Shown here in pieces: positions 9,601 to 61,871 of a stretch of DNA of 64,000 nucleotides. The notes under the pieces are model-generated. The model saw only the letters and a program-made list of their open reading frames with translations, did not search any database and was not told where the DNA came from. Position numbers and translations under genes: made by a program. Origin of the DNA: Caecitellus pseudoparvulus. Taxonomy: Eukaryota > Protista > Bigyra: Bicosoecida. Position 1 is the first letter of the stretch. Each line of letters begins with the position of its first letter. The stretch covers positions 248,001-312,000 of the forward strand of contig CBFFRQ010000040.1 in the NCBI GenBank assembly GCA_965644315.1, in the 5' to 3' direction.

Positions 9601-10031
9601 GTGGGGAGGGGCGGTCTCTGGGTGGATTCGGTGCTGGGGGTGTCGGCGTTCTCCGAGGGCCCCTCAGCCTCGGTCCCTCCCCAGGCCACCCGACGCCCCC
9701 CCACATGCCCTCCTCGCACGCCTTCTCAGGTGCCTTGGCAGGCTTTGCAGCCACCACCCCCCCCGGCACCACTGTCGGCGGCAGCTCTGCGTTGCGCACC
9801 AGCACCAGCGGAGGGCTGGGATCCCCCTCCAACCCGTTCCTGCGGCAGCACCCCCTGGCCACCTCTCGCAGCGGCTCGGTGAGGGAGGGGCAGGGGGACG
9901 AGGACAGTGGCTCAGTCGGGCTGGGCAGCCACCCGGGGCAGGGCGCCTCTGCCTTGCTGCCCAGCGCCGACGGCCTCTTCGCCTTCCACGCCTCGCCGGG
10001 CAAGGCGCCAGGGGACGCCCAGAGTTTGTGA
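6691..10031 (+). CDS. Three-repeat MYB transcription factor with long low-complexity C-terminus
   Basis: Spliced repeats: WSLALDDTLRDTVAAMGTHSWKA|VAAHIG..EVKGRW; GNWTDAEDAKL..WADVAAAMYWRDGKQCRDRWYNQLDPAINR; GPWTAEEEAVVFEAQKCIGNKWCEIAKLLPGRTENSVKNLWNS. Introns at about 7108-7184, 7254-7362 and 7562-7644. Start could be 6691 or 6754. Confidence 0.92.
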
Positions 10032-43145: not shown

Positions 43146-44373
43146 ATGAGTTATTCCTTCCGCGCAAGTGCCAGCTTTCGCTGCCATGCCCGCTGTCAAC
43201 GACACCTCCCTCGTTGGCTCACCCTTCACAGGGAGTTGGCGTGGAGCAAGACCACCGCTACTCGAACAAGCAGCTCAAGCTGCAGCGGGGCATCAAGGCG
43301 CCTGCAGTGTACAAGATCAAGGTATGGCGCCTGGTGCGGAATTTGCAACGGCCCTGACACTTTGCTCGCCTCGCTCACCCCAGGTGGACACACGCAAAGT
43401 GCACAAAGGCGTGATTGGCAAGTGGGTGGCTGAACGCCTTACTGGTATGCTTGGCTTCGAAGATGAAGTCGTGATTGGCTTGGTGAACAACACGCTGGAC
43501 AGCGACACCAACCCCAATCCCCGTGAGCTGCAGGTGAACTTGACTGGCTTCCTTGAGAAGAAGGCGCAAGAGTTCGTCACTGAGCTCTGGGAGCTCCTCA
43601 CCACGGCCCAAGAGACTCCCAGTGGCATCCCTGCCAAGCTTCTCGAACAGCGCAAGGCCGCCATCTCGGCACGCCAAGCTGCTGACTCTGCATCCATCAC
43701 CGCAGCCGCGGCTGGCGCCATGTCACAAGGCCCTGGTGCAGTAGCGGCCGCGTTGCAACGCCATGCAGCAACCGCTCAACAAGGTCCTGGCACGCACTCC
43801 GCAGATGCACGCCGGAGCCGGCATCACCAAGTCGCCGGAGGGGGTCCGCGCGACACTGTGGGACGGCAAGGTGTTGACGATGGGTGTGCCTCACGCCCAC
43901 CGCGGCGCTGGGAGGAGCAGCACAGATGGCAAGGCCGGGGCAGAGGGTTCGAAAGGAGAGGACGTTCGCCACCTCGGCACCGTGATCGCTCCCCACCCCG
44001 GCACCGTGATCGCTCGCCACCCCGGCACCGTGATCGCTCGCCACCTCGGCACCGTGATCGCTCGCCACCTCGGCACCGTGATCGCTCGCCACCCCGGCAC
44101 CGTGATCGCTCGCCACCCCGGCACCGTGATCGCTCGCCACCCCGGCACCGTGATCGCTCGCCACCTCGGCACCGTGATCGCTCGCCACCCCGGCACCGTG
44201 ATCGCTCGCCCCAAGCACACGTTGACGAGTTTGGGCGTGCATTGCCACAGGCAGCAAGGAGGTCAGTGTCCCCCGCAGCTGCAGCCGCTGGAAGTGGGGG
44301 CGGGGACGAAAGTGTGTCGCGGCTAGACGAGCTGCGCCAAGAGCTGCGCCAGCGGCAAGGCGCGAAACGCTAG
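43146..44373 (+). CDS. SRRM1: PWI-domain SR-related splicing factor (SRRM1/SRm160-like), 3 exons
   Basis: MSYSFR|GVGVEQDHRYSNKQLKL..K|VDTRKV..IGKWVAERLTGMLGFEDEVVI..PNPRELQVNLTGFLEKKAQEFVTELWELL..AQ..SGIP, followed by RS-type repeats. Confidence 0.9.
43975..44214 (+). repeat. Coding tandem repeat, 24-bp unit x10 (RHRDRSPP)
   Basis: cggcaccgtgatcgctcgccacc(c/t) repeated every 24 bp with no spacers. Confidence 0.97.
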
Positions 44374-45092: not shown

Positions 45093-46363
45093 ATGATGGA
45101 GGGGGGTACGCACTCCCTTCTTGAAAGACAAGACATGCTCGACTTTGCTTTCTTCTGTTCAGGACTGCTGGAGCAAGGGGCATCCAGTGCGCTTGCCACT
45201 CCAACGCATGTGCGTTTCATGAACGTTTCACTCGCAACGGGCGTCACTTTGCAGTCAGCATTCTACTGCAGGAGGTTGCTTGCGCTGCGCTGGCGCGAGG
45301 GAGACTGCTTCGATGTGCATTCAGAGCCTTTCAAGACTTTGTGGAGCGCAGGAAGTCAAGCAAGGCACGCGTAGTGAGGCTACTTTCATTGATGGAGCTG
45401 CTGGCAAATCCCCTAGCTGTGGCGTTTCGGCGTTGGCGAGAACTTGTGATGCGCCAACGGTGAGCATGGTGCTGATCGCAAACCATCCACTATGTGGACC
45501 ACATGTTCTGCCGCTATTTTTCAGGCTTCTGCTCAGGCGAGCTTTTTCTACTCTGCGCAAGCGGACCTTTGAGCTGTCCCTCATGCGGCGAGTGGTCGAG
45601 AAAGCCGCACAAAGGCACGTGGGCGTCGCGCTTCGCCTTGCATGGGACAAGTGGAGCGCTTTTGTGCGGCACACAAATCTGACCATTATGTGCCCTGTTC
45701 TTGGTGCTCAAGCAGTGCAGCGGAGGCGCTTCCAAGCATGGCGGACTTGGGTCCGACACCGAATGGCATGTCGCCGACTGCATAACTTGGTGCGTAGTGC
45801 AACATCTATAGCTCACAGCTGAGGCCGAGCATGCACCGCAACATATCAACGCGTTGCATTTCCAGATATGCGAGCGCATGCTGCGCGCTTCTCTTCGACA
45901 CTGGCACAGACAGTCTTGTGTGTACTCTCAATTCGGTGTTGTTTGCAGGCCAGTGCTGCCGCGCGCCACACTTGGGCCAGATGAGCATTTGCAGCACACC
46001 ATGCACACGTTCGCCTCACTCCCAGCCCCCGCCTTTGAGTTCCCGTGGGAGCGGTCAGCCCGACTGAGCGGCCAGCAGCTCCCCACACCTTTTGTGCGGC
46101 ACGAAGCACCATCAAACTCCCTGCCAGAACGCCTGCAGTACACTCTCCACACCAAGATTGACAAGGGTGCCGAGTGTGACTATGGCACTGCATGCTCAGC
46201 TGCTTCTAAGCAGCACAGAAGCTTTGTCGGAACCAGCTTGCACCGCTGCGTGGCACGGTGGGTGCTGCGGGAGGTGTGGTGGGGCTGGCGAAGGTGGAAT
46301 GCCAGCCTGCGGATGCAGGAGGAAGCTGACGCACTACGGATAGCGTTGCGCCCCCGTGGGTGA
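45093..46363 (+). CDS. Hypothetical multi-exon protein with Sfi1-like Trp-spaced helical repeats
   Basis: Segments LRRAFSTLR, LRLAWDKW, QRRRFQAWRTW, LRASLRHW and VWWGWRRW lie across ORFs joinable by GT-AG introns. Exon structure and start are uncertain. Confidence 0.45.
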
Positions 46364-49300
46364 GGCAGATGCCGCCATGCCATGGCCAGCTGCCAAGGGG
46401 TTGCCTGAGGCCAACACGCCCGTTTCCACCTCCCAGCCATCCGGCTCGGAGAAGAACTCCTGCACCAGGCGCTCATCACGCTCGTCTGCCGAATCCATTG
46501 GTATGTTTGGCTTGGGTGCAGACTTGGGCTCGACGGGCCCCTCTTCAAGTGCAGGAGAGGCCGCAGCAGCTTCGGAACAGGCCTCATCCAGACCTTTTAC
46601 AGACACCTCCACTACACCTGATTCAGACGAAGCCAGCACGTCAGCCGAAGCAATAGCGCGGCCCTCCGCATCATCGTCAGGCACGCTGGGGGCAGCCTTC
46701 ACCGTGTCGCCGGCTGCAGGCGGGAAGAACATCTCCATCACCGTCGCATGCCCCAGTCCCACGGCCAGCCCCAGCAGCAGCACCGCATTCACCAACACAA
46801 TGCACATGGTCACAACGACACGTGCGCCCCCCGACACCTCATCCTGCTCCAGGAACAAACCGCCAAGCATGGTCAGCAAGGACACGAAGATGCTGGCACG
46901 CTCCAGAGCGTTCATGGCGCCCCGAGCAAAAGGCTGGGCCGAGTCGTGCGCCGCCAAAGCAGCCAACCCCACCAGCATCGTGCAGTACACTTGCATGCGC
47001 AGCCCCAGCGGCTGCACAAACACGGCCACAAACGCCAGCATGGCTTTGCGCGTCATGATTATGGTCTCCCAGAAGTACCACTTGCGGGTGTAGCCGCCGT
47101 ACAGGAACCCAAACGTCCCCAGCACCTCGGGCGAGTCCAGGCGCTTCCGACGCAGCCACAGGATGATGCTGGCTGACAGGGGGATGCCGACGCCATACAC
47201 GAAGAAGGCGGGCAGCCCCACCCCCCACATCCACACTTGGTTCGACGCACTGCTGCACTCCACATTGGGGTCAGCCACCAGGAAAGCACGCCCCGTGTCA
47301 TCCAGCTCCTCACACGTGAACAGCCGCAGAGTGGTCTGGGCCAGGCTCATGTGCAGCATGAATGCCGTCACCACTGCGCTGACGATCCAGCCGTCCACGT
47401 TGGCCCGCACCCACTGCGCACCGTGCAGGGATGCGGGGTCAACTCGGAAGGAGCCGCACAGGGCCGTGGGCAGGAGCGCGAAGATGCGCTGCCCGATGCG
47501 GGTGAAGTAGTTCACCACCCAGTACACTGTCAGGATGAGCAGCAGGGCGACAGGCGTGACCAGGGACAGGATGACACTGGAGCGGTACGCCGACAAGCCC
47601 CCGCCCAGCAAGCACTCCACTGAGATGACGCTGTCCGACACTGAGCTGACGGTGTTGAAGGCGTCCAGCATGCGCTGGATGGCGGTGGGCCACTGCAGCC
47701 TGAACAGCAGCGCCACAGACGTGATCTGCACGTGGTTCAGCAGGATCTTGTTCAGCGCAGTGCTGTTGGCGTCACCCGTGTCCTGCAGACTGATGTTGGT
47801 GAGGTACGCCAAGATACACAGTGCCAGCAGCAGCGTGCCAGCCAGAGCCAGCACGACCAGGCCTGCATCTTCGCACCGGGCGCACCCTGCAGCGCCACTG
47901 CGGGCGTAGCCAGGCGAGCACCGCAGGCACAGTCGGCCTGAGTAGCCCTCCGCACATGCCTGCTGTTGGTCACCGCTGGCTGCAAAGGCGGCGGCCAGGG
48001 TGCTGGCGTTCATGCCAGCGTGTTGGGCGGGGTCGTAGCCACGGCAGGCCTCCTCCTGCTCACAGGGCACGAACGTGAGGCCGTTGGCAGATCCGTCCAT
48101 ACGGTAGAAGCCTCGCCGAGGAACGATGTCGGCAGTGCTGCCACCGCCACAGTGGGCCCCCGTGGGGCACTGTCTGCAGACACGGTTGGCGACGGTGGGC
48201 TCGTGCAGGGCGAGGAACTGCTGCGGGCCACATGCCTCGTACACTGCGCTGGAGGGGGGGGACACCGGGCCTGTCCCACCAGGGTTCGCAGGTGTTACTT
48301 TAAACCAGTACGGCTGAGCTTGAAGCCCATCAAGCTCAACTGAATACTCGCTTTGGAACATGCCCACTTGCCCACCAATTTCTCGCTCTTCTTCCAGGAC
48401 GATTCCCGTCGGCCCAACAAGCCTAGAGTCTACCGTGACTGCTGCGGCAACGAAGTTCTCAGCAGTTGAAATGCTCAAGGAGAACTGATTTGGCGCTGTT
48501 TCGTTTTCACTGCGCGAGTGTGTCCACCGGAGCAGGACAACTTCAGACCTTCCTACAACTCGCGAGCCTGTTGGCGAAGCGGGCGCAAGCTGGGGAGGCT
48601 GCACCTGTGCTGCTTCTGGCAGGACAAATTCGAGGCACGGGGCACGTGCAACAAAGGAGCTCGTGGGTTCAGCGTACGCCGAACCTTCAAAGAAGCCACA
48701 CTGCCCAAAATGCTCGGCAGCTGCACCGTTTCGTAAGTGCACACTGAGCTTTACAAACCCTGTGAGTGAATCTGGGGTCTCGCACTGCAAAGTGGTTCTT
48801 GAAATCCATCGAAAGGTTGGGCAGGGCTCCCCATCCAACTGAACGCTTTGCAAGTCGCGGGGCTCGAAGCCGAAGTCCCGTCCGATGATGGTCAGTGTGC
48901 TTCCAGGCACGACTTGGGCTGGCGTCGCATCACCATCGATGGAGGGCTCCAAGATCAAATCAAGTGCATCAGTGAGCTCCAGCTCTTGAACTGAGGGCGA
49001 GCCGAAAAGGCTTGTCCGAACCAAAACGCGAAGCTCAACTCGTTTACTGTCTGCATCGACTGCGAATCTCGCGATTTCATCCGCTGGCACACCCTCACAC
49101 CGCACCTCAGTGGGGCTCACCCACACCAATGTGCGCGGAACACTTCCCGCCTGGCACGCAACAGAGCCTATACTGAGCATGGCAATGTCATCCGTAGAGA
49201 TGCCAAGGTTCGCGCCCTGAAGGGTGAACGAAAACATTTCAACTGGAGCGGTGAAGTCTGGGTTGAACCGCTCACGCAGCAGGAGCTGTGGCTTCGGTGA

Positions 49301-52300
49301 CCCTGCAGCTTGCCCGTCAACCACAATGCGAGTGAGCCTGGGCGGGAACATGAGGAATATGCCGCTTGATGCGCTTGAGAATCCGCCTGCGGTCTGCACC
49401 CGCACAATTCCAGGCTCGACAGTGGGCACCCTGCAGGTCAGGCTCTGGGGGCTTTGCCAAACCACCTCGAGGCACCCTTCGCCACTGACAGTGACGGATG
49501 TCACTTCCTCAGCTGACCTGCCAAAGCCTGAACCAGAAATTGTGATGACATCGCCATAGTCAACTGACGTCGGCGTGATGCTGCTCACGACCGGGTGTAG
49601 CAATACAGGAAGCGACTGCTCCATAGTCGTTTCTCCAATGGAAAGCGAGAAGACAACACTTGCCGTCTCAGGAAACCCATCCCGAGCGTACCCCAAGCTG
49701 CTGAACAAAAGGCCTTCGCAGGTGACCAAAGACTCAGAGAACGTGGCGTCACTCCGCGGACATGGCACTGCACCAGATGACACGACTCCACTGCCTTCCA
49801 GCCTCGCTGTGAGAGTGTACAGGGTCCCGTCAGAGCCGAAGTTCTCCCCTGATATCGTAACACGCTCGATCGTAAGGTTTGCAGCGTCCGTGCTTCCCAA
49901 CACTACGCTCGCATCGGTCTCGAAAGACCCAAGCCGGACAGAAGACAAGGTTGGGGCAATGTACGTTACGCGCATGACAGAGCTCGCAAGGTTGCCTGCG
50001 GCGGGATACGTCTGATCTGCAACAGATACTGAAACTGGCAATGTACCATGCCCTGCTGGGATGACACAGCGCAGCAGCGTGTGACTGATGTGCAGCGTGG
50101 TAACGCAAGGGGTAGAGCCAACGAAAGCCTGTGCCCGTACTGCAGGTGAGCCGAATTCACGTCCATGAATGTCCACCAAGGCCCCTCCACTTGGCTGCAA
50201 GTCCTCGACACTCTGGTGGTACTGCAGAGTAGGGGTGTTGTAGTGAAAGCGTCCCTCGCCGCCGAGGCAGGACTGGCCGGCGATTTCGCACTCTATATCC
50301 AAGTCTCGCCCAGCACCCTCTGGCCAATGGCATTGAATGTAATGACCATAGTCATCGACAAAGTGGGTGTCCCGAAGCACACACTCCCTCCTCTCGAAGC
50401 CAAAAGCCTCACCCAGGCGAACCCAAAACTTGCGCTCGGCAAGGCCGTCGAAGGGTGTGTCGCTGCCGATGAAGTTGCGGCCCTTAATCCTGACGTAGTT
50501 CTCCTGCTGGGAGAAGGCTGCCAGCCCCCCAGTCGTTCCAAACGTCCACTCGTCTTTTTGGATGCCGATTGCAGCCAGCTGTAGCCCTGTGATGACAGGT
50601 GGTGCATACGACACGGCGTTCTCCAGGGAGATCTCGTCATGGGAACCCACGACAAGTGTGACGGTCAAGTTGGTGCCCCAACCCCGCGGAGGCAAGCACG
50701 TCAGGGCTGTCGAGTTCACAATAGTGACACTAGAGCATTCATAAGATGGCGGCAGGGCGTAATCTAAAAATGAAAACACAAATGTAACAGTCGCAGTGCC
50801 GATGAACCCGGAGCCGATGATCATCACCCGGTCTCCCGAGCCAAAGGGTCGCTCTGGGATGCCGGCGGAATCAGCAGGGATAACCTTCGAAATAGTGGGG
50901 ACTGGCTGAGCGTACGAGAAGGACAAGGCACCAGGCCCTTGCGCCACCCCAATCGCTCCACCAGAGCTGACCACCACTGGTAGGTTTGCACCCAACGCAC
51001 TCGGGATGGTGCACGTGACCTCAAATGGTCCAGTTCCCGTTGCGGACAGTGATGCAGGAGTCCACTGTGCCCCGGTGCACACGGCGTCCCCAAGACTGAC
51101 TTCAGGGGTGGTGTCTGTGACCAGAACTTCGGCTGCGGTCGTGAAGCCCGTTAGAGTCACTGTGAGTGTGTCGCCTGCAGAGCCGACAGTCGGCGTCAAG
51201 CCAGACACGAATGCAGCGGCAACGCAAAAGTAGTAGCTGCTTGCACCAGTGTAGGCACGCTGCTGATTCACTGGACAGCCAGAATTGAAGACATTCAAGG
51301 ACGCGCCTGGGTTGCCCGCACCCCGTACGATCTCACCGCTGGCGAAGTTGCTCGCGGAAAGAAAACCCTCCGGCCAATACTGCACGTTGTTGTCTTCCAA
51401 AGACAATGTCGTCATGGACGCCACGGCACTGAAAGCTGTGGGGGAGACTTCAGACAAGACGCCGCGCGGTATTCGCTCAGCTGAAATGTCAAGAAGGCCT
51501 GCTTGATCGGCACAGGAAGACAGCCGCAGTTGGCTTTCCGTGATGTACTCCATGGAGCACTGGTGAGCGTGCGCTGGGTGAGAAGCGGGGGCAGAGCTGC
51601 CCCAGCACAGGATGCGCTGCGAGTCAGTCAGGCCGCACGTGTGGCTCTCAGTGCCAGAGACCCAGACATACTGCTCGCCTGGGTTCAATGCAGCCACGCT
51701 CGTGCGTCCAGCCGTGGTCGAGCCCCAGCAAACGACGTCTCCGCTGCTCTTCAACCCGCACGTGTGGTACAGGCCTGCAGAGACTGAGGTCCAAGACTCA
51801 CCTGGCCCCAGAGCAGGGGGTGAATCAATGCCTGGCTCCATGCTGGTTGACCCGAAGCACTTGAGCTCGCCCGTGTTCAGGGTTGCACAGGTGTAGTAAA
51901 AGTGCGCAGACAAGACTTCAGCCCAGCTCTCTCCTGGGCCCAGAGCCGGTGCGTCAAGCAGAGAATTCGCGCTGCTGCCCCAACAGCGCAAGTTGGCAGC
52001 AGACGTAACGCCGCAGCAGTGCAGGGAGCCACACGCGACCGACGCCCACACTTCGCCGCCAAGCAGCCCAGGCGGAGACAGCTGCCCGTCATCATCTTCG
52101 CCCCAGCACCGCATGTCGCTCCCGTGCTGGTTCGTCACCCCACATGACACACTCCGGCCGATACCAAGCATGACCCAGTGCTCCTCGTCGTTCAAAATGA
52201 ATGGGGAGTAGACCGAGCCTGAGGCAAACGGGTCGCCTCTACACGACACCTGCCCATCATCTGTTGTCGCGCAGAAGTAGTCGAAACCAACTTGCAGGTT

Positions 52301-52612
52301 GGACCAGTAGCCGCCCTCAGGTGGGTTTGAAAAGGCAAACGTAACCGACGTGTCCTCCGCGCCCGTGGAGTCCCAGCACACAACAGCACCATCAGTTTGC
52401 AAGCCACAAGTCCGGGTGGAGCCAGCTGCCACCTGTGCCCACTGGGGAGCTGGGACCACATCACCAGGTGAAGGTGTAAGCCGACGATGCTTTGAGTCTT
52501 GAAGCATGCCCAGGCACACGCCCGCATGCACAAAGACGAGGAGCAGGGCGCCTCGAGCTGCCAGCGTCGCTGGCAACGCCGAGCCCAGCCGATTGCTTTG
52601 CTTGCCCGGCAT
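46334..52612 (-). CDS. Large surface receptor-like protein A: signal peptide, RCC1/BLIP-II-like repeats, short LRR, 8 IPT/TIG, FN3, Cys-rich region, about 9 TM
   Basis: Repeats such as VSAGLYHTCGLKSSGDVVCWG; LSLEDNNVQYWPEG; IPT units such as PVVSSITPTSVDYGDVITISGSGFG; FN3 YWFKVTPANPGGTGP; CAEGYSGRLCLRCSPGY; FGFLYGGY..YFWE..RK and QPF..NALE, resembling the TRP/PF06011-like protist membrane domain. Start taken at the Met before the signal peptide. Confidence 0.9.
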   Translation of the reverse strand: MPGKQSNRLGSALPATLAARGALLLVFVHAGVCLGMLQDSKHRRLTPSPGDVVPAPQWAQVAAGSTRTCGLQTDGAVVCWDSTGAEDTSVTFAFSNPPEGGYWSNLQVGFDYFCATTDDGQVSCRGDPFASGSVYSPFILNDEEHWVMLGIGRSVSCGVTNQHGSDMRCWGEDDDGQLSPPGLLGGEVWASVACGSLHCCGVTSAANLRCWGSSANSLLDAPALGPGESWAEVLSAHFYYTCATLNTGELKCFGSTSMEPGIDSPPALGPGESWTSVSAGLYHTCGLKSSGDVVCWGSTTAGRTSVAALNPGEQYVWVSGTESHTCGLTDSQRILCWGSSAPASHPAHAHQCSMEYITESQLRLSSCADQAGLLDISAERIPRGVLSEVSPTAFSAVASMTTLSLEDNNVQYWPEGFLSASNFASGEIVRGAGNPGASLNVFNSGCPVNQQRAYTGASSYYFCVAAAFVSGLTPTVGSAGDTLTVTLTGFTTAAEVLVTDTTPEVSLGDAVCTGAQWTPASLSATGTGPFEVTCTIPSALGANLPVVVSSGGAIGVAQGPGALSFSYAQPVPTISKVIPADSAGIPERPFGSGDRVMIIGSGFIGTATVTFVFSFLDYALPPSYECSSVTIVNSTALTCLPPRGWGTNLTVTLVVGSHDEISLENAVSYAPPVITGLQLAAIGIQKDEWTFGTTGGLAAFSQQENYVRIKGRNFIGSDTPFDGLAERKFWVRLGEAFGFERRECVLRDTHFVDDYGHYIQCHWPEGAGRDLDIECEIAGQSCLGGEGRFHYNTPTLQYHQSVEDLQPSGGALVDIHGREFGSPAVRAQAFVGSTPCVTTLHISHTLLRCVIPAGHGTLPVSVSVADQTYPAAGNLASSVMRVTYIAPTLSSVRLGSFETDASVVLGSTDAANLTIERVTISGENFGSDGTLYTLTARLEGSGVVSSGAVPCPRSDATFSESLVTCEGLLFSSLGYARDGFPETASVVFSLSIGETTMEQSLPVLLHPVVSSITPTSVDYGDVITISGSGFGRSAEEVTSVTVSGEGCLEVVWQSPQSLTCRVPTVEPGIVRVQTAGGFSSASSGIFLMFPPRLTRIVVDGQAAGSPKPQLLLRERFNPDFTAPVEMFSFTLQGANLGISTDDIAMLSIGSVACQAGSVPRTLVWVSPTEVRCEGVPADEIARFAVDADSKRVELRVLVRTSLFGSPSVQELELTDALDLILEPSIDGDATPAQVVPGSTLTIIGRDFGFEPRDLQSVQLDGEPCPTFRWISRTTLQCETPDSLTGFVKLSVHLRNGAAAEHFGQCGFFEGSAYAEPTSSFVARAPCLEFVLPEAAQVQPPQLAPASPTGSRVVGRSEVVLLRWTHSRSENETAPNQFSLSISTAENFVAAAVTVDSRLVGPTGIVLEEEREIGGQVGMFQSEYSVELDGLQAQPYWFKVTPANPGGTGPVSPPSSAVYEACGPQQFLALHEPTVANRVCRQCPTGAHCGGGSTADIVPRRGFYRMDGSANGLTFVPCEQEEACRGYDPAQHAGMNASTLAAAFAASGDQQQACAEGYSGRLCLRCSPGYARSGAAGCARCEDAGLVVLALAGTLLLALCILAYLTNISLQDTGDANSTALNKILLNHVQITSVALLFRLQWPTAIQRMLDAFNTVSSVSDSVISVECLLGGGLSAYRSSVILSLVTPVALLLILTVYWVVNYFTRIGQRIFALLPTALCGSFRVDPASLHGAQWVRANVDGWIVSAVVTAFMLHMSLAQTTLRLFTCEELDDTGRAFLVADPNVECSSASNQVWMWGVGLPAFFVYGVGIPLSASIILWLRRKRLDSPEVLGTFGFLYGGYTRKWYFWETIIMTRKAMLAFVAVFVQPLGLRMQVYCTMLVGLAALAAHDSAQPFARGAMNALERASIFVSLLTMLGGLFLEQDEVSGGARVVVTMCIVLVNAVLLLGLAVGLGHATVMEMFFPPAAGDTVKAAPSVPDDDAEGRAIASADVLASSESGVVEVSVKGLDEACSEAAAASPALEEGPVEPKSAPKPNIPMDSADERDERLVQEFFSEPDGWEVETGVLASGNPLAAGHGMAASASPTGAQRYP
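46633..48278 (-). repeat. Left arm of a 1646-bp inverted repeat (constant cassette of receptor A)
   Basis: The reverse complement matches 57670-59315 without indels; about 24 substitutions by manual comparison. Confidence 0.97.
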
Positions 52613-53548
52613 TCCGAGCCTGGTAAGCGGGCAATTTGAATGCATCCTCATCTGCATACCCTGTGGAAGGAACGATTGGGCGATGGGTGGAGTGCAGGTT
52701 CGCCTAAGTGCCGTGCAGGCTTGCTTGCACGGGTGAAGGGGACAGGAATGCCAACTTCCGCAGCAGCTGCCAGACACCCCGCATCCACCCTCAACGCACC
52801 AGCAAGGTCAAGCCACCACAGCAGATGGGGTGCAAAGGGACACAACAGAGTGCCAGCTGAGAAGTTCAGCCGTGTGTGGTGTGGGCGCTGCTCGAAGGTG
52901 AATCTGTGGATGTGTTGGACGTCGCACGCTCGATCGCAGCTTGCCGCGAAACGCAAGCTCGGCTTGTAGCGGGGACCCTGGCATGAGCGCAGCCAAAGAG
53001 GGAATGGGGGCCATGCTTCTTATTTTGGGCAAGCGTATTTCATTTTGCCACGATTCCAGACACTCAGGCTTGCGGCTGCTTGGGGCGCTGACGATCAGCC
53101 CCCCTCAAGCCAGGAGTTTCTGTGCTGACGTTGCAGTTTCCGAAGCACAGCTGCTCGAGACAAAATACGCGCGCTCGAAGAACAAGCACAGGGTTCCAGT
53201 ACACATGTTTGATTGGGGGAGTTTGTACCAGGCTTCAGCCCGGGCAAACTGCGCACTTCTTTGCGACCGTGCGGGTGCTCTGCCTTCGCAAGTGATCACT
53301 TTCTATACCGCTCGCCTTTCCCTCGACGTGAAGCTGCCGAAGCCCACACACGGGGTAGACTATTCACAACTTGCTTTTTGTCCGCCTCAGGTGCGCTTTG
53401 TGTCGCCGCTGCATACTGCAAGGCGCAGAGTTGCCAGCGCGTCGAGGTGCTGAGCGAAACTCTCGCCTGGCGAAACGCGCACAAGCGCTGGCCATCTTTA
53501 CATGCGCACGCACTCACCTTCATCTCCGTGCCACAAGCAGGATTAAAT

Positions 53549-56500
53549 ATGAAGCAAAGGAACCAATTGAACCGATTTCGTGGACTCTCTCAGCGGCGTG
53601 GAGCCTTGCTTGGCGTAGCCTTCATGGTGCTGGCGCTGCGCGTCGCACAGGCGGCTGTGCTGCAGCCGGGCGACGCCCTACCTCCCCCAACATGGAAGCA
53701 AGTGAGCCTGGGGAATCGCCATGCCTGTGCTCTGACGACCAGCGGTACGATTCTGTGCTGGGGTTCGAACGATAACGGCCAGTGCGACGTGCCAGCCCTC
53801 CCTGCCGGCGTGGAGTGGACTTCACTCTCCTGCGGCGGCGATGCCGAATTCTCGTGGGACGGCACGGACGTGGAGCACTGCTGTGCACTGCGATCCGACG
53901 CAGGCATCTCCTGCTGGGGTGCAGCGGCAGAACCGTCCCAGCTGGAGGTTCCTGACCCCCCCCAAGGCCGCACGTGGACGTCAGTCACGGCTGGCGGCGG
54001 GTACACCTGTGCCTTAGACAGCGATGGCCAAGTGCTGTGCTGGGGCGCCGGGGCAGCGTCCAGCGTGAACAGCGCATCTGACAGGAGTTGGGTTGCGTTC
54101 GCGGCTGGAGATCGGACAGCGTGCGGGTGCAGAACAGACGGAGTGGCGCAGTGTTTCGGCAACAGCCCTGGAACGTTGAGCGGCCATTCAGCGTCCGTGT
54201 ACCGCTGTGGAGCAGTGGACACGGGTAGAACCTCAGTGTGTGTCTTGTACAACTTGCCTGGTAATGCTGGCAATGGACCAGCATACACATCGCAGTGCTC
54301 TGAGCCGACTGGTTTCAAGTACGGCATCGATCGTGGTACGTTTGCCACGAGGAACTACGCCTCTGTCGCTGTGGGGCGTGCATCTGCGTGTGCCATCAAA
54401 GTCGACGGCAGTGCTGAGTGCTGGGGCTTCACCACCAGCGGCTGGGGCCAGACGACGCCTCCAGTCTTGGCCTTGGGCGTGACCTGGCTCACAATTGACG
54501 TGCGGGGCGCGTTCGCATGCGGCATTGACTCTGAATCCCAGCTGCATTGCTGGGGAGATGCCAGCTTCGGGCGCCTCTCGCCACCAGACTTACCCCACAA
54601 GTGCAGCGGGGTGGTGCAGGAGGACGACACAGCACGCATCACCGCTTGCGTTCCTGGCGCCTCCATGAACCTCAGCGCTGGGGCATTCCACGGACGCCTT
54701 GCGGTGTCGAGCATCGCGTCAGGGGCATTTGATGGCGCGAGTGGCATTGCCGAGCTGGACCTGTCACTTCAGCGCCTCCACTTCCTGCCCGCTGACTTGT
54801 TCACGAGCGGCATGTTTACGGCAGGGGACAGCGTGATCGTCGGCGGCAATCCCGGCGCATCTTCAGGAGCGTGCTTCAACGGTGCCGGCTTCCGGGCCAT
54901 ATATCCCGGGGCCAGCGCGCAGTTCTGCATGTCTGATGGCACCGTCTTGTCCATCGCGCCTGCCGCCGTTGCCACAGACGGAAGCGGCACGCTGACGGTT
55001 GAAGTGCTGGGGTATGATGCTGTGTCATTTGTGACAATTGGAACGCTGTACGTTGAAGTTGGGAACGAAGAGTGCACAGGTGCGGCATGGACTGCGGCAG
55101 CTTCGAGTGCGTCTGGCGTCGGCCCGTATGCCTTGTCCTGCACCGCTCCCGCTGGGACGGGTGCTGGGTTCGCAGTCTCTGTCTCGGCTTTCAACGGGAA
55201 CGTGGCGTTTGTCGAGCAAGTAGAAGGCGTAAATGTGTCCTACGCGAGCCCTGTCATCTCGTCCGTCGAAGATGGGCCTGGAGGGTACATCGTTGGGAGT
55301 GTTGCTCCTGTGAAGTTGCATGGCGCCAACTTTGGGCCCGCTCTCCAGGCAACCCCAGTTGTGTTGATCCAGCTCCCTGACGCCCATGAAGAACCGTGTG
55401 TGAGTGCTCAAGTCGTCTCAGATACGCTTATTTCATGCACACTTGTGGCAGGCTGGGGACAGGATCTGCGCCTGTCCCTTGCTTTGAGCGGTGCATCTGT
55501 CGTGCTGCCAGGCGCCTTCTCTTTCGCCTTGCCACGCATTTCAAGCATTGAGAGCAGCTCAAATGGAGCGCCGGGCCCATTTTCAACCCTTGGAGCAGCT
55601 GCTGAAGACGACAGGCTCATTGTGCGAGGAACGAATTTTGTGGTGCCCAGACCTGGTGCAGAGGGAAGCCTCGCATTTGCCACAGTGCACCTGGTAAATG
55701 GAACAGGCAACAACACAGACACTGAGTGCGGTGATGTCATTGTATCCAGCACTGAGGAGCTGTCTTGTCTTTGGCCAGCGGGCATCGGGGCCAACTTCTC
55801 TGTGGTGTACCGCTACAACGGCACTGCATCCACAGGCGGGGAGGGCTTGTTTTCGTATGCTGCACCAGTTGTCACGAGTTTATCAGCACGCCAGCTGTCT
55901 CAAGCAGGCGGGGACAATCTTCTCGTCCAAGGGCATGGCTTCGGACCTCCAGGGTCTGAAGTGACTGCGTATGTGGGAACGGCGCCTTGCTCCACCACAA
56001 CCCAGGCGGGGGATGACACCCTCGTGTGCGTCCTTCCGGCTGGTGCGGGGACTCAGTTCGCAGTGTGGGTTGATGCTGGCCGTCAGAATTCGAGCCAGAT
56101 TCCCGGCGCTAACAACAGCGTGAGTTTCGCCACTCCCGTCCTCACTTCTGCGCAAGTTGGGACCTTCACTGGCGTCAGCAATGTCCTTCTCGCTGCAGCG
56201 TCGGGCAGTTTGCGCATTTCACCAAATGTGACGGTGCGGGGCTTGTCACTTGGAGCGGCTCACCAGGCAGTCGTGTCAATGTCCGTAGCAGGCCAGCCCT
56301 GCCCATCCGGATCCTTGTTCTTCACCTCCGGTGGTGGCTCCGGAACAGAGACTGTCACGTGCGCATCCCTCAGGGAAGCCAGCTTCAACGCGTCAAGTCC
56401 ACAGGTTGTGCTGACAGTCGCGAACTCGCAAGCCACCTTTCCCATCGCTGTCATGGGCAGGCCCCAAATCGACCAGCTGTCTTCCTCTGCCGGGGTTGCT

Positions 56501-59500
56501 GGCCAGACACTGACCGTACTTGGGTCAAACTTCGGACGAGGCCCAGTCGATGCCCCCGTCGTCCGCATCGGAGGCTGGCAATGCGACACAACGTCTTGGG
56601 CGGATGCAGGGACTGTTTCGTGTCTCGTTCCAGACGGGTGGGGTTCGAACCACACCGTCAGCGTCGAGACAGCAGGGGGGCTGCAATCTGAGGAGCAGAT
56701 TCCATTCTCATTCACGCTTACCTTGGACGAAGTGAGGGTGACCCAGGATCCCCTGGGATTCGTGCACCCCTCAGCAACCCCCCACCTTCTTGTGCAAGCT
56801 GCTCCCACCAGTGCTGTCGCGTACAACCTGTCTGTGGGGGGAGTTGCAATGGGCCAAGCCGCAGTGGATGTTGCTTCGCTGTTCATCGGAGGAGCTCGCT
56901 GTGCCTCGGTCAGGGTGCTGTCAAGTAGCAGCCTAGAGTGCATTGGGCTGCCAGCTCGGCAGCTTGTGGAGGGATTGGGGCGTGCATCCATCCGGTTATT
57001 CGACGGAACGGAAGCTGGGCTTGACGCTGCGGTCCAAGTCCAGGCTGCCCCGTTCGTGACCGATGACACAGCCAGGTCAGCGTTCCCGGGGGAGTCAATC
57101 TCAATCCTTGGCCGAGGGTTCGGCCGCAGTGCTGACGAGGCCCCTGATGTGCGCATTGGACAGTTTCAATGCCTGAACCAAGGCCAGCGCAGCTTCTGGA
57201 CGTCTGACACAGCTTTGTCTTGCAGCCTTCCTCAGTCTGCGACTGGGCTTGAACTACCTATCACAGTCACGACACCCACAGGCTTGACTTCCAACAGCAA
57301 CGTGACGTTCAGTTTCAGGTTCGCAGCAGGCGAAGAGCCCATTGATCCCCCAACTCAGGCGCCGACAGGGCTCACCGCGACCCGCACGGAAGGCCTGCTC
57401 CCCATCACTCTGACCTGGCTACACGAAGCAGATTCGGACGAGGCAGAGCCTACTCAGTTCATTCTCTATCAAAGTACACTGCCCCTGGGTGTTCAGAACA
57501 TCAGCTCAGCCGCTGCGACATCCCGCCCTGTTGCTGACGGGGGCATTCTGCGGAGACCTGGTTCTGCAGTCACAATGCCCAGTGGCCGCATTCGCTATAC
57601 GTTCGAGGTAACCCTGCCTAATGTGGCCGCGCAGCCATACTGGTTTGCGGTGGCGGCATCCAACCGAAATGGGACAGGCCCGGTGTCCCCCCCCTCCAGC
57701 GCAGTGTACGAGGCATGTGGCCCGCAGCAGTTCCTCGCCCTGCACGAGCCCACCGTCGCCAACCGTGTCTGCAGACAGTGCCCCACAGGGGCCCACTGTG
57801 GCGGTGGCAGCACTGCCGACATCGTTCCTCGGCGAGGCTTCTACCGCATGGACGGATCTGCCAACGGCCTCACGTTCGTGCCCTGTGAGCAGGAGGAGGC
57901 CTGCCGTGGCTACGACCCCGCCCAACACGCTGGCATGAACGCCAGCACCCTGGCAGCCGCCTTTGCAGCCAGCGGTGACCAACAGCAGGCATGTGCGGAG
58001 GGCTACTCAGGCCGACTGTGCCTGCGGTGCTCGCCTGGCTACGCCCGCAGTGGCGCTGCAGGGTGCGCCAGGTGTGAAGATGCAGGCCTGGTCGTGCTGG
58101 CCCTGGCTGGCACGCTGCTGCTGGCACTGTGTATCTTGGCGTACCTCACCAACATCAGTCTGCAGGACACGGGTGACGCCAACAGCACTGCGCTGAACAA
58201 GATCCTGCTGAACCACGTGCAGATCACGTCTGTGGCGCTGCTGTTCAGGTTGCAGTGGCCCACCGCCATCCAGCGCATGCTGGACGCCTTCAACACCGTC
58301 AGCTCAGTGTCAGACAGCGTCATCTCAGTGGAGTGCTTGCTGGGCGGGGGCTTGTCGGCGTACCGCTCCAGTGTCATCCTGTCCCTGGTCACGCCTGTCG
58401 CCCTGCTGCTCATCCTGACAGTGTACTGGGTGGTGAACTACTTCACCCGCATCGGGCAGCGCATCTTCGCGCTCCTGCCCACGGCCCTGTGCGGCTCCTT
58501 CCGAGTGGACCCCGCGTCCCTGCACGGTGCGCAGTGGGTGCGGGCCAACGTGGACGGCTGGATCGTCAGCGCAGTGGTGACGGCATTCATGCTGCACATG
58601 AGCCTGGCCCAGACCACTCTGCGCCTGTTCACGTGTGAGGAGCTGGATGACACGGGGCGTGCTTTCCTGGTGGCTGACCCCAATGTGGAGTGCAGCAGTG
58701 CGTCGAACCAAGTGTGGATGTGGGGGGTGGGGCTGCCCGCCTTCTTCGTGTATGGCGTCGGTATCCCCCTGTCAGCCAGCATCATCCTGTGGCTGCGTCG
58801 GAAGCGCCTGGACTCGCCCGAGGTGCTGGGGACGTTTGGGTTCCTGTACGGCGGCTACACCCGCAAGTGGTACTTCTGGGAGACCATCATCATGACGCGC
58901 AAGGCCATGCTGGCGTTTGTGGCCGTGTTTGTGCAGCCGCTGGGGCTGCGCATGCAAGTGTACTGCACGATGCTGGTGGGGTTGGCTGCTTTGGCGGCGC
59001 ACGACTCGGCCCAGCCCTTTGCTCGGGGCGCCATGAACGCTCTGGAGCGTGCCAGCATCTTTGTGTCCTTGCTGACCATGCTTGGCGGGTTATTCCTGGA
59101 GCAGGATGAGGTGTCGGGGGGCGCACGTGTCGTTGTGACCATGTGCATTGTGTTGGTGAATGCGGTGCTGCTGCTGGGGCTGGCCGTGGGACTGGGGCAT
59201 GCGACGGTGATGGAGATGTTCTTCCCGCCTGCAGCCGGCGACACGGCGAAGGCTGCCCCCAGCGTGCCTGATGACGATTCGGGGGGCCGCGATATTGCTT
59301 CGGCTGACGTGCTGGACGATGCTGTGGAGCCAGTCGCCCCGGACGCAGCCAGCGCTGATTCTGGCTTGCCCCATGACGAGGCAGCTGGAAGTGAGACCAG
59401 TGCATTGTCACACAGCGCACGGGGTGGCGAGTCTGCCAGAGGCTCCGTCGCCCCCGAGACGCTGGATGCCGCCACAGCTGTTGACGATAGCGAGGCGGTG

Positions 59501-59557
59501 CAAGGCATCCCTCCTTCCAGCGCATTGAGGGGGGATTCTGGCGAAGTCAGTTCGTGA
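53549..59557 (+). CDS. Large surface receptor-like protein B, paralog of A with the same domain order
   Basis: Signal peptide ALLGVAFMVLALRVAQA; VSLGNRHACALTTSGTILCWGSNDNGQ repeats; LRR LDLSLQRLHFLPADLF; 8 IPT units; FN3 YWFAVAASNRNGTGP; C-terminal membrane module identical to A for about 525 aa. Confidence 0.9.
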   Translation: MKQRNQLNRFRGLSQRRGALLGVAFMVLALRVAQAAVLQPGDALPPPTWKQVSLGNRHACALTTSGTILCWGSNDNGQCDVPALPAGVEWTSLSCGGDAEFSWDGTDVEHCCALRSDAGISCWGAAAEPSQLEVPDPPQGRTWTSVTAGGGYTCALDSDGQVLCWGAGAASSVNSASDRSWVAFAAGDRTACGCRTDGVAQCFGNSPGTLSGHSASVYRCGAVDTGRTSVCVLYNLPGNAGNGPAYTSQCSEPTGFKYGIDRGTFATRNYASVAVGRASACAIKVDGSAECWGFTTSGWGQTTPPVLALGVTWLTIDVRGAFACGIDSESQLHCWGDASFGRLSPPDLPHKCSGVVQEDDTARITACVPGASMNLSAGAFHGRLAVSSIASGAFDGASGIAELDLSLQRLHFLPADLFTSGMFTAGDSVIVGGNPGASSGACFNGAGFRAIYPGASAQFCMSDGTVLSIAPAAVATDGSGTLTVEVLGYDAVSFVTIGTLYVEVGNEECTGAAWTAAASSASGVGPYALSCTAPAGTGAGFAVSVSAFNGNVAFVEQVEGVNVSYASPVISSVEDGPGGYIVGSVAPVKLHGANFGPALQATPVVLIQLPDAHEEPCVSAQVVSDTLISCTLVAGWGQDLRLSLALSGASVVLPGAFSFALPRISSIESSSNGAPGPFSTLGAAAEDDRLIVRGTNFVVPRPGAEGSLAFATVHLVNGTGNNTDTECGDVIVSSTEELSCLWPAGIGANFSVVYRYNGTASTGGEGLFSYAAPVVTSLSARQLSQAGGDNLLVQGHGFGPPGSEVTAYVGTAPCSTTTQAGDDTLVCVLPAGAGTQFAVWVDAGRQNSSQIPGANNSVSFATPVLTSAQVGTFTGVSNVLLAAASGSLRISPNVTVRGLSLGAAHQAVVSMSVAGQPCPSGSLFFTSGGGSGTETVTCASLREASFNASSPQVVLTVANSQATFPIAVMGRPQIDQLSSSAGVAGQTLTVLGSNFGRGPVDAPVVRIGGWQCDTTSWADAGTVSCLVPDGWGSNHTVSVETAGGLQSEEQIPFSFTLTLDEVRVTQDPLGFVHPSATPHLLVQAAPTSAVAYNLSVGGVAMGQAAVDVASLFIGGARCASVRVLSSSSLECIGLPARQLVEGLGRASIRLFDGTEAGLDAAVQVQAAPFVTDDTARSAFPGESISILGRGFGRSADEAPDVRIGQFQCLNQGQRSFWTSDTALSCSLPQSATGLELPITVTTPTGLTSNSNVTFSFRFAAGEEPIDPPTQAPTGLTATRTEGLLPITLTWLHEADSDEAEPTQFILYQSTLPLGVQNISSAAATSRPVADGGILRRPGSAVTMPSGRIRYTFEVTLPNVAAQPYWFAVAASNRNGTGPVSPPSSAVYEACGPQQFLALHEPTVANRVCRQCPTGAHCGGGSTADIVPRRGFYRMDGSANGLTFVPCEQEEACRGYDPAQHAGMNASTLAAAFAASGDQQQACAEGYSGRLCLRCSPGYARSGAAGCARCEDAGLVVLALAGTLLLALCILAYLTNISLQDTGDANSTALNKILLNHVQITSVALLFRLQWPTAIQRMLDAFNTVSSVSDSVISVECLLGGGLSAYRSSVILSLVTPVALLLILTVYWVVNYFTRIGQRIFALLPTALCGSFRVDPASLHGAQWVRANVDGWIVSAVVTAFMLHMSLAQTTLRLFTCEELDDTGRAFLVADPNVECSSASNQVWMWGVGLPAFFVYGVGIPLSASIILWLRRKRLDSPEVLGTFGFLYGGYTRKWYFWETIIMTRKAMLAFVAVFVQPLGLRMQVYCTMLVGLAALAAHDSAQPFARGAMNALERASIFVSLLTMLGGLFLEQDEVSGGARVVVTMCIVLVNAVLLLGLAVGLGHATVMEMFFPPAAGDTAKAAPSVPDDDSGGRDIASADVLDDAVEPVAPDAASADSGLPHDEAAGSETSALSHSARGGESARGSVAPETLDAATAVDDSEAVQGIPPSSALRGDSGEVSS
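57670..59315 (+). repeat. Right arm of the 1646-bp inverted repeat (constant cassette of receptor B)
   Basis: Begins tgggacaggcccggtgtc and ends ggctgacgtgctgg; matches the reverse complement of 46633-48278. Confidence 0.97.
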
Positions 59558-59560
59558 TGT

Positions 59561-61871
59561 CTATTCGCTGTCTGCGGCGGCTGCTGCTGCGGGGGTCAGT
59601 CTCCTTGCAAGCACAGACCTTTTGGGCTGAAATGCAACTTTGTCTGCGGAGGACATGGAGCGTGGGCGAGTCAGGGGCGGGGTGCACGGCACGTCCGTTA
59701 GTGCATCTCGCGACTTGGCCCGCACTCTCGGGCTCGGCGCGCCTGGGACGGACATCAAGGCCGGAGATGTGATGCTGCGGCGTAATCGGGTCTGGTGTCC
59801 AGGAGTGGGAGGGAGGGCGCGCGTGGGGCTGCCGGGAACGAGCACTGCGTGCACGTCGCTTGGCGTGCAGCCCTTGGGCACGCTGCCTGGGTCTGTGGTC
59901 AGCACTGGGGCAGAGGAGCCCCTCCTAAACGGCTGGCTCCCCGAGAAAGACCTCATGACACTCCCTAGGATGCCCCTCTGTGCAGGAGGTGCCCCTCCTG
60001 CTGTGCTAGCCGCGATCGTCGTCGCCGCACGTCCGCGTTGTCGTGCGGCTGGTGCCGCCTCCGAGCTCTGCGGCAGCGACCTCACAGGTGCCCGAGCGAG
60101 GGTGACGTCTTGAGAATCTGATTTTTCCCATGACAGCTGCTTCTCCAGCGTCACCTGTCCACCCGACATGACCATGACCGGCGTGGAGGGCGGGTGCGCC
60201 TTGGCGGCTTCTGCAGCCGCCGCGGCAGGAGTCCACAGCGCAGGGTCCTGCGCTGCAGGCCCAGGGGACACCGCTTTGGCCTTGGCAGGGAGGAGAGGCG
60301 TCGGAGACTGCTCTGCGACGGCCTGTGCTACTGCAGCTGTGCGGTGCTCGAAGGTGGTCATGCGCTGCACAGGGCTCGTGACTGGCCCATGCTCAGCCTC
60401 AAACGCAGCCCGCAGTGCTCGCAGCTGCCTCCTGCGGAATGAAAACTTGAATGCTGCCGCGAGGAGCGCATCGCCGTCCAAGTCTTCGTGCATGTGGGGA
60501 AAGTACATGAGCATGCCTTCCATGTCCAGGGCGAGCAGAGCCGCTTCGTGGTGCTGCAGAACAGCCAGGCCCACTCGGAAGACGACCTTCCATCCCTCGA
60601 GCAGGAACGAGTCCCACACCCGGCATGTGACAGAGAAGGGGAAGGAGTATGTGAAGATCGTGAGCATCCACTGCGCGGCGTACATGGTGGGGTGGATGCC
60701 GTGTTTGTCAAAGTGGGCCGCCAGCTTCGGCAGGTACTGGCGCACGAGTCCTTGCAGCTGGTACTGCAGCAAGTTCACGAGGGGCAGGCCGGGGGCAAAG
60801 ATGTCTGCGAGACGGTGCGGCTCGTACTCGCACAGCGTCAGCAGCATCCAGAATGCGTCCTCCTCGCTCAAGTACGACAGAAAGAATGCCGTGAGGAAGC
60901 CTGCGGTGCCGGCGCGAAGCGGGGCAGTGCAGGGCGCGACACAGCGAGCACTGCATCGCACGCCCTTCACGTACTCATGCCTTGGCAGTACCCCACTTGC
61001 GGGTTGAACAGTGCGTACGCACGCAGAACACGAAGGAGGGATGCCTGGCCCAGTCCTCCACGCTGCCGGAACAGCTGCATGCGGGGAAAGGTCCGGGTGA
61101 TGTCTCTGTCGATTTCCCCCATCACCCGCTGCTGCGGCTCGGGTATCGGGGCATCCAGCAACTGTGCGTATAGGTCTGTGAATGGCAGGAAGCAGGGAAA
61201 TAATGCTGAGGGACTTGGCATGGTTCTGCGTCGCGACGGCTGCAGGCTCACCTGGGTTGGCCGCCTTGCGCCGAGAACTGTGCACCAGAAGAGGCCAGAC
61301 GACAGCTCTGAATGCGTCAGGAATGCCTTTGCGGCACCGGGTCTTCAAGTGGTTCGCCTTGCGGCCTGTCCAGCTGTGTGGCAAAGCAGCAGCAGCGGAG
61401 TGTGGGGGTATGCGTGAGGCTCGTGCACGTGCTCGGCCACGGGCGGCAGTCCATGCGCACGCACGTTTCCCAATTCGCCAGCATGTCTCGCCACTTCTGC
61501 AGGCGCATGTTCTCCAGCACCAGCCTCTTCTTCCGCTTGTCTTCGTCCACCCCCGACACGCCAGCTGCGCCGGGCAGTGCAGCTTCGGCCTTTGGCACTG
61601 CCGAGACACTGTGGGCTGTCAGCTGAGAGGCAGCGTGATCACCCCCACTACTAGCAGCTGCTGCGCCAGCTGAAGTGGCAGGCTGCTGGGTTGACGGCGG
61701 CGGCGTTGTTGGCGGCCCGGCTTTGTCTGCTGCATTCTGCGCCATCGAATGCTCGCGTTGCGGGGTGCCACCTCCAACTTCAGCAGGAGCGGTACCAGAG
61801 GGCCCTACTTCATGCACAGACACACCCACCTCAGTGGGTAACACATCCCTTGCGTGGTCCTCTGCTGCCAT
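59561..61871 (-). CDS. TBC-domain Rab GTPase-activating protein (TBC1D10/EVI5-like), about 4 exons
   Basis: RLQKWRDML, LKTRCRKGIPDAFRAVVW, EIDRDITRTFP (Arg finger), VGYCQGM (Gln finger), EEDAFW, YAAQWMLTIF, RVWDSFLLEG. Confidence 0.93.

Follow-up and report, generated by a model that had tools for sequence, protein, structure and literature searches.

Two neighbouring genes in the bicosoecid Caecitellus pseudoparvulus raise the question of how a gene pair can be anciently diverged over most of its length and almost identical over one sharply bounded part. The genes, here called A and B, lie head to head in a 64,000-nucleotide (nt) stretch of contig CBFFRQ010000040.1 (GenBank assembly GCA_965644315.1, positions 248,001 to 312,000 of the forward strand); this stretch is the window, and coordinates without another label refer to it. 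Both genes encode giant membrane proteins in which a large ectodomain is followed by a Cys-rich stalk, a multi-pass membrane module and an acidic tail. A sequence-only reading of the window had described the pair as diverged ectodomains fused to a near-identical membrane cassette, and had proposed a variable-sensor/constant-transducer receptor system for the recognition of prey, pathogens or self. The mosaic itself has been confirmed here, and it is very probably explained by regional interlocus gene conversion between the members of an old inverted pair. The main features are as follows.

46334-52612, minus strand: gene A, likely coding sequence, 2092 amino acids (aa) plus stop, within the open reading frame (ORF) 46334-52777 of 2147 codons
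53549-59557, plus strand: gene B, likely coding sequence, 2002 aa plus stop, within ORF 53213-59557 of 2114 codons
52613-53548, no strand: divergent intergenic region of 936 bp between the start codons of A and B, G+C content (GC) 0.58
48279-52612, minus strand: ectodomain A, outside the tract (unconverted), GC at third codon positions (GC3) 0.62
53549-57669, plus strand: ectodomain B, outside the tract (unconverted), GC3 0.63
46633-48278, minus strand: arm A of the probable converted tract, comprising the Cys-rich stalk, the transmembrane (TM) module and the first ~24 tail codons
57670-59315, plus strand: arm B of the probable converted tract

The repeat search returned a single inverted repeat, with arms at 46633-48319 and 57629-59315. 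Within it, a base-by-base comparison delimits a sharp-edged core of 1646 bp (46633-48278 versus 57670-59315) with 24 mismatches and no indels, which corresponds to 98.54% identity. Beyond both core ends identity drops at once, to 17-43% per 30 bp; upstream of the core there is a short conserved motif from the end of the FN3 domain, with 16 of 18 bases equal, and then 23 diverged bases. Protein identity between A and B per 100-aa bin is 22-34% in the ectodomain, 100% in the cassette and 17% in the tails, which are unrelated, the alignment collapsing past 46633 and 59315. The two ectodomains showed no DNA similarity by blastn (word size 11, E<=1e-3), and identity at their third codon positions is 0.18-0.41, compared with a chance expectation of 0.27 from base composition. 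Synonymous sites are saturated in the ectodomains, and synonymous divergence (dS) is 0.045 in the block. The description given by the sequence-only reading, of two divergent ~2000-aa genes with the same domain order, ectodomains lacking DNA identity and an abrupt, indel-free block followed by unrelated tails, was thus right in its coordinates and figures. Identity and dS, which it had suggested comparing along the genes, are not uniform and step at single-base borders.

In its own genome, ectodomain A finds ectodomain B as its best match (29% identity, E 6e-66) and ectodomain B finds ectodomain A (29% identity, E 4e-64), the partner being the only strong genomic match of each. Because the ectodomains are each other's closest relatives, A and B are best regarded as an old inverted head-to-head duplicate, of which the C-terminal module alone is young. 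With a dS of 0.045 in the block beside saturation in the ectodomains, the sequence comparison indicates, as had been argued before, that localized conversion or replacement is required by this combination of an old pair and a young block.

The differences that remain inside the block are informative about what followed. A 1572-bp core of 524 codons carries 18 differences, of which 18 are synonymous and none is non-synonymous (Nei-Gojobori, S=408.5, dS=0.045, dN=0); the probability of such an outcome under neutrality is 3e-11. The 18 differences are evenly spaced (Kolmogorov-Smirnov p=0.97), and 17 of them set G/C against A/T, with the A/T allele in one arm at nine sites and in the other at eight, a split expected for two functional copies that would have decayed independently after one homogenisation. 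The restriction of changes since the conversion to synonymous sites argues that both genes are functional and that the module is under strong purifying selection. Where the tract runs into the cytoplasmic tail, its final 72 bp carry six differences, four of them non-synonymous. Because this excess over the neutral expectation is not significant (Poisson p=0.11), 46633/59315 is probably the true end of the tract, constraint being relaxed in the tail.

Independent read data were available as Logan contigs from four public runs, which carry four different organism labels and were placed on window positions 54000-59900. Contigs of the four runs end exactly at 57670 and 59315, and word depth doubles inside the block, from 75.5 to 139.1 and back to 68.5 in run X1 and from 40.2 to 81.3 and then 23.4 in run X8. 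The loose contig ends correspond to the FN3 end of gene A before 57670 and to the tail of gene A after 59315. Because both types of junction occur at the same bases in independent runs, the block is not an assembly artefact, and the mis-assembly of the arms that the sequence-only reading had considered is contradicted. The contigs cannot bridge the 1.65-kb repeat, and so they neither phase the arms nor show the orientation of the middle segment.

The same data allow a comparison between strains. The window and run X8 differ at 36 positions over 3700 bp of ectodomain B (~1%) and at a similar rate, 7 of 615 positions, in the downstream flank; the conversion event is older than this ~1% divergence among the sampled strains. 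Among the 24 differences listed for ectodomain B, 17 are synonymous and 7 non-synonymous. This would indicate purifying selection and an ordinary level of diversity, unlike that of hypervariable recognition loci, a reading based on one gene, on contigs and on a partial list of sites. Window positions 54232-54346 are covered in run X1 by two alternative 115-bp contigs, of depths 52.6 and 32, which points to heterozygosity or to a culture with two variants.

A further question is whether the block is shared more widely in the genome. Its DNA occurs exactly twice in the 30.6-Mb assembly. At the protein level, the module matches 114 stretches, spread over many contigs and ~60-70 giant open frames (~2000-8000 aa each); the closest paralogue is 36% identical over the whole module, and others reach up to 41% over parts. 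Because there are two copies only and the next paralogues are 36-41% identical, the block is not a constant cassette of the whole family. The genome-wide count of cassette copies that the sequence-only reading had proposed has been made, and what it returned was the one pair, with the other 60-70 loci at most 41% identical.

The mosaic pattern, by comparison, recurs in two other pairs of this family. Other clusters were analysed by self-comparison and codon-aligned sliding windows, with C68, C52, C69 and C81 left out. Cluster C89 holds a tail-to-tail pair of 3082 and 3067 aa, in which nucleotide identity is 98-99% at ~aa 89-389, decays gradually to ~50% in the middle of the ectodomain, jumps to 100% over ~aa 1830-2830 and is 48% for the last ~250 aa. 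This membrane-side tract begins ~530 aa before the cassette and stops within the TM domain; the protein that follows, again the last ~250 aa, is ~44% identical between the partners. Cluster C50 holds a head-to-head pair of 3162 and 3326 aa, in which ~aa 240-340 are 97% identical and everything from ~aa 1450 onwards 98-99%, on either side of a middle part at 42-48%; the membrane-side tract starts ~1000 aa upstream of the cassette. Tracts in the N-terminal ectodomain are thus present in both C89 and C50. Because the tract ends have no fixed position relative to the domains, ordinary homologous repair fits better than a cassette mechanism. In addition, an island of 550 bp with ~98% identity is common to three neighbouring giant receptor genes of C50 that are otherwise 42-48% identical there, and it looks like a short isolated conversion patch.

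C50, 70118-70671, 82019-82564 and 90551-91104: the three copies of the 550-bp island

A tandem triplet at C8:61284-95480, with members of ~3000 aa, shows ~95% identity over the whole 12-kb unit and is a plain tandem duplication, in contrast with the mosaics of the inverted pairs. Copies on C140 (L008), C12 (L009), C14 (L010) and C53 (L017) are 82-96% identical in patches, and two of them sit in short open frames near contig ends; these may be haplotigs or dispersed recent copies. Taken as a set, the comparisons indicate that linked family members, mostly inverted ones, are habitually homogenised in a mosaic fashion in this genome.

Base composition bears on whether conversion was a single or a repeated process. 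Along one mRNA, GC3 is 0.62 (A) or 0.63 (B) in the ectodomain, 0.83 in the block and 0.61 in the tails. Across the three pairs, 100-codon windows were classed as converted at >=95% identity and as unconverted at <70% identity; mean GC3 is 0.79-0.84 in converted and 0.59-0.63 in unconverted windows (Mann-Whitney p 2e-4, 5e-6 and 5e-6). The N-terminal tracts of C89 and C50 are also GC3-rich, so that the rise is not peculiar to the codons of the membrane domain. In family members that lack a near-identical partner, a GC3 step is mostly absent (C80, +0.04; the third C50 gene, 0.00; C62b, +0.06). Based on these data, conversion is likely to have been GC-biased and repeated.

Several observations weigh against this recurrent form of the explanation. 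The 18 evenly spaced differences fit a single event equally well. Run X7, which is of low depth, carries both arm alleles at 57955, 58507 and 58516, a hint that there has been no further homogenisation since the strains split. Moreover, the gene at C62:207757-217251 (C62a; L011, L047, L048) has a cassette GC3 of 0.86, with 0.73 in the ectodomain and 0.65 in the tail, and no near-identical partner of it was found in the genome, where its best match is 71-72% identical at the nucleotide level. The prediction that a high-GC3 cassette implies a near-identical partner thus failed at C62a, for which a lost partner or allelic GC-biased conversion is possible. Because of this exception GC3 is supportive only, and recurrence and GC bias are weaker claims than the conversion event itself.

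Taking these results together, regional conversion would have proceeded as follows. A and B are members of a large family of giant multi-pass membrane proteins that has expanded in this lineage, and the last 1.65 kb of one copy, which includes the stalk, the ~9-TM module and the start of the tail, would have been overwritten by the other copy, presumably through non-reciprocal homologous repair between the inverted copies. The latest conversion would lie ~dS 0.045 back, before the divergence of the sampled strains, and the confinement of the GC3 rise to the tract suggests repeated GC-biased conversion over a single event. The module probably continues to be converted because the arms are kept similar enough to pair by purifying selection, and the ectodomains may escape it either as being now too diverged to pair or as being selected to stay different. 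The inverted orientation makes this conversion tolerable, since crossing over from one arm to the other would turn the 9.4-kb middle around and exchange the tails, deleting no gene.

The architecture of the two proteins was also determined. Start codons were taken as the first Met before a hydrophobic signal-like stretch, i.e., ORF residue 56 in A and 113 in B. Gene A encodes, in order, a signal peptide, an RCC1-repeat propeller, IPT/TIG repeats, an FN3-like end, the Cys-rich stalk, the ~9-TM module and the acidic tail; gene B has the same domain order, and the proteins are colinear end to end. Pfam matches are TIG (1.2e-45) and RCC1_2 (4.9e-19) in A and TIG (5.4e-37) and RCC1_2 (2.5e-18) in B, with DUF7630 matched weakly in both. 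The intergenic region 52613-53548 is presumed, from its position, to be a shared promoter region. The stop codon of gene B (end 59557) lies 3 bp from that of a convergent RabGAP-TBC gene (ORF 59561-61609, minus strand), and the 3' ends of these two genes must therefore overlap or be extremely short. The parts of the proteins on the membrane side are listed below.

57671-58072, plus strand: Cys-rich extracellular stalk, B copy, ephrin-receptor-like / DUF7630-DUF7631-like
58073-59242, plus strand: multi-pass membrane module of ~9 TM helices, B copy, from hydropathy peaks and an AlphaFold2 (AF2) model
46334-46632, minus strand: tail A with stop, acidic, cytoplasmic, GC3 0.61, 104 aa with 19 Asp+Glu versus 6 Lys+Arg
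59316-59557, plus strand: tail B with stop, acidic, cytoplasmic, GC3 0.61, 85 aa with 17 Asp+Glu versus 3 Lys+Arg

The stalk of A and B scores 23.5 bits (E 6e-5) against DUF7630, below the gathering cut-off of 27 bits, and 21 of 22 relatives match this family at E<=0.1. Likeness of the stalk to DUF7630 / Ephrin_rec_like is therefore clear from the sequence, with formal membership below threshold. Alignment of relatives shows invariant cysteines in the stalk, which is modelled by AF2 as small beta-hairpins. For the module, the AF2 model has a predicted local distance difference test score (pLDDT) of 81 and a predicted template modelling score (pTM) of 0.79, its long helices lying between residues 138 and 517 of the cassette. 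By model and hydropathy, a C-terminal bundle of ~9 TM helices follows a large extracellular part, as in the TRP family PF06011. PF06011 was matched in 7 of 22 aligned relatives (best E 4e-6), and the A/B cassette itself has no PF06011 match at E<=0.1; against the family cut-off of 28.5 bits, a Nannochloropsis homologue scores 30 bits and homologue P0001 16 bits. This family comprises fungal Flc proteins and Schizosaccharomyces pombe Pkd2, a putative stretch-activated calcium-permeable channel (PMC6727746, PMC9727806), and a channel-like or transducing role of the module is a reasonable guess by analogy.

Structure searches place the module in a widespread group. In the PDB, Foldseek found nothing at E<=0.001 (best E 0.04, TM-score 0.14), and VIA-align gave Z of at most 7.6, not above background for helical bundles, with no solved counterpart found. 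Predicted structures of ESM-Atlas clusters match the module at TM-scores of 0.7-0.79; these clusters carry Ephrin_rec_like and DUF7630, with PF06011 in 11-15% of members, and come from Chlorophyta, Haptophyta, Cnidaria, Porifera and others. When public protein data were searched with a module profile, 31,581 clusters matched at E<=1e-3 and 3,758 at E<=1e-30; among the best 150 matches listed, which are proteins of 450-5900 aa, the usual place of the module is the C-terminus or close to it. Very different N-terminal parts are combined with this C-terminal module across eukaryotes. A word-index protein search with the cassette found seven relatives, none from this genome, and no relative was recovered when metagenome contigs were scanned with the cassette protein. 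Neither P0001 nor P0002, the two closest foreign homologues, has an adjacent partner gene on its contig, P0001 lying 456 bp from a contig end. Literature searches found no paper mentioning DUF7630 and nothing relevant on ephrin-receptor-like/TRP proteins in protists. The module is also predicted to pair with itself, with an interaction prediction score from aligned errors (ipSAE) of 0.40 versus 0.00 for the best control, contact agreement of at least 95% between runs and partner pLDDT of at least 71. An ipSAE of 0.40 is reached by 21 of 30 proteins solved as one-chain pairs and 0 of 23 single chains (17 of 29 and 0 of 30, respectively, for eukaryotes), so that the prediction supports binding and does not show it.

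This self-pairing is of interest because selection could keep the modules identical for a reason of its own, if A and B co-assemble through their ~9-TM, TRP/Pkd2-like module into an oligomer with two different ectodomains. Such an arrangement would agree with the 18:0 record in 524 codons, with the shared divergent intergenic region, which makes co-expression plausible, and with the matches of relatives to PF06011, the family of the putative fungal Pkd2 channel (PMC9727806). If this were true, the pair would be one of several loci at which a 'two sensors, one transducer' unit is genetically fixed, and selection would favour conversions that restore the identity of the assembly module while the sensing parts are kept apart. 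However, purifying selection on each copy alone explains 18:0 equally well, and a predicted homodimer says nothing specific on A with B. As the C89 tract stops inside the TM domain, full module identity is not required there. Overall, co-assembly as the cause of the pattern is considered unlikely. The dedicated receptor system of the sequence-only reading, in which prey, pathogens or self would be recognised with the help of a cassette deliberately shared among ectodomains and exchanged at a defined junction, could draw on the finding that all three inverted pairs examined combine a diverged middle of the ectodomain with a homogenised membrane module, and on the occurrence of the same C-terminal module under very different N-terminal parts across eukaryotes. 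It does not fit with a cassette present in two genes only, nor with tracts whose ends differ among the pairs, ignore domain borders and, in C89 and C50, include N-terminal ones. Ectodomain B, with its ~1% and mostly synonymous differences between strains, is not hypervariable, and neither a recombinase nor a defined exchange site was found among the larger ORFs of the window. This proposal has thus become improbable.

The repeat itself allows another scenario, i.e., that the 9.4-kb middle (48279-57669) is an invertible element, the flipping of which swaps acidic tails and 3' ends as a regulatory switch. Long in-frame inverted repeats would indeed let a crossover exchange the tails with both ORFs left intact, but the contigs, which end at the repeat, gave no evidence for both orientations, and the larger ORFs of the window include no site-specific recombinase. 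Occasional inversion is to be expected as a side effect wherever there is an inverted repeat and does not in itself imply a switch, which we consider highly improbable. An artefact (mis-assembly or haplotype collapse), or a recent duplication of the whole gene followed by extremely fast divergence of the ectodomains, has nothing in its favour beyond the general risk that comes with repeats. Mis-assembly and collapse were rejected on the basis of both junctions at identical positions and doubled depth in four runs, and of arms that differ at 24 sites. Recent duplication was rejected on the basis of ectodomain third positions at chance, many indels and the lack of a DNA match at word size 11, because selection at the protein level cannot yield chance third positions beside a block with a dS of 0.045. 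Either history is hardly credible, and interlocus conversion between A and B is retained as the most probable explanation.

Similar arrangements are known from other organisms. In Dictyostelium, the allorecognition genes tgrB1 and tgrC1 form a head-to-head pair with IPT/TIG-rich ectodomains and a shared intergenic region; the Tgr proteins cross the membrane once and vary extremely from strain to strain. A and B resemble this pair in being head to head and IPT/TIG-rich with a shared intergenic region, and differ from it in having ~9 TM helices and, for ectodomain B, only ~1% and mostly synonymous divergence between strains.

The closest precedent for the conversion pattern comes from fugu, where the Pcdh2 alpha and gamma subclusters have a divergent 5' ectodomain and a 3' region, encoding the membrane-proximal ectodomain, TM and cytoplasmic part, that is >99% identical, also at synonymous sites; GC3 is raised from ~40% to 55-69%, and repeated regional gene conversion was inferred by the authors (PMC1852091). 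As in A and B, linked receptor paralogues are diverged in 5', homogenised in 3' and raised in GC3 (here 0.62 versus 0.83). The fugu genes, however, are tandem arrays of many single-pass cadherins in a vertebrate, whereas inverted pairs of multi-pass proteins of 2000-3300 aa are found in this protist, and the A/B tract is common to two genes only, with one dated event (dS 0.045). In birds, TLR1A/TLR1B and TLR2A/TLR2B have been homogenised by conversion except for the ligand-binding ectodomain region (PMC6107061). These are likewise adjacent paralogous receptors in which part of the ectodomain is spared, but they differ in fold (leucine-rich repeat-TIR), taxon and scale, and the escaping region carries positively selected sites in birds whereas ectodomain B appears to be under purifying selection. 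Human Y-chromosome palindromes span tens to hundreds of kb and homogenise whole genes, in contrast to the 1.65-kb arm inside two otherwise diverged genes seen here. Their inverted arms are likewise kept near-identical, by intrachromosomal GC-biased conversion (PMC8600007). Fungal Flc proteins and S. pombe Pkd2 (PMC6727746, PMC9727806) share with A and B the large N-terminal extracellular part and the C-terminal multi-TM module, but the A/B cassette has no PF06011 match at E<=0.1 and no solved structure resembles the model. By analogy with these systems, the A/B pattern is best seen as regional gene conversion of the kind already known from animal receptor clusters, and not as a new receptor principle.

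The pair nevertheless offers a very clean case of regional conversion, with single-base borders, a datable last event, the 18:0 record and a GC3 step within one mRNA, in a marine protist, a setting where recombination and GC-biased conversion are little documented. It also draws attention to a large family in which a conserved Cys-rich stalk and ~9-TM module are found under very different giant ectodomains. Trees and orthology calls made from the C-terminal half of such genes will mislead.

Elsewhere in the window, GC is 0.58-0.74 per 2 kb, with an average of ~0.62, and the peak of 0.74 at 8001-10000 lies over an ORF with a Myb domain (7569-10031, plus strand). For a neighbouring ABC transporter, the nearest relatives are 54-55% identical. 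A 24-bp tandem repeat at 43966-44210 (10.2 copies, 96% match), which corresponds to an 8-residue peptide repeat, is found inside ORF 43168-44373 (plus strand), which has a PWI domain (E 1e-23).

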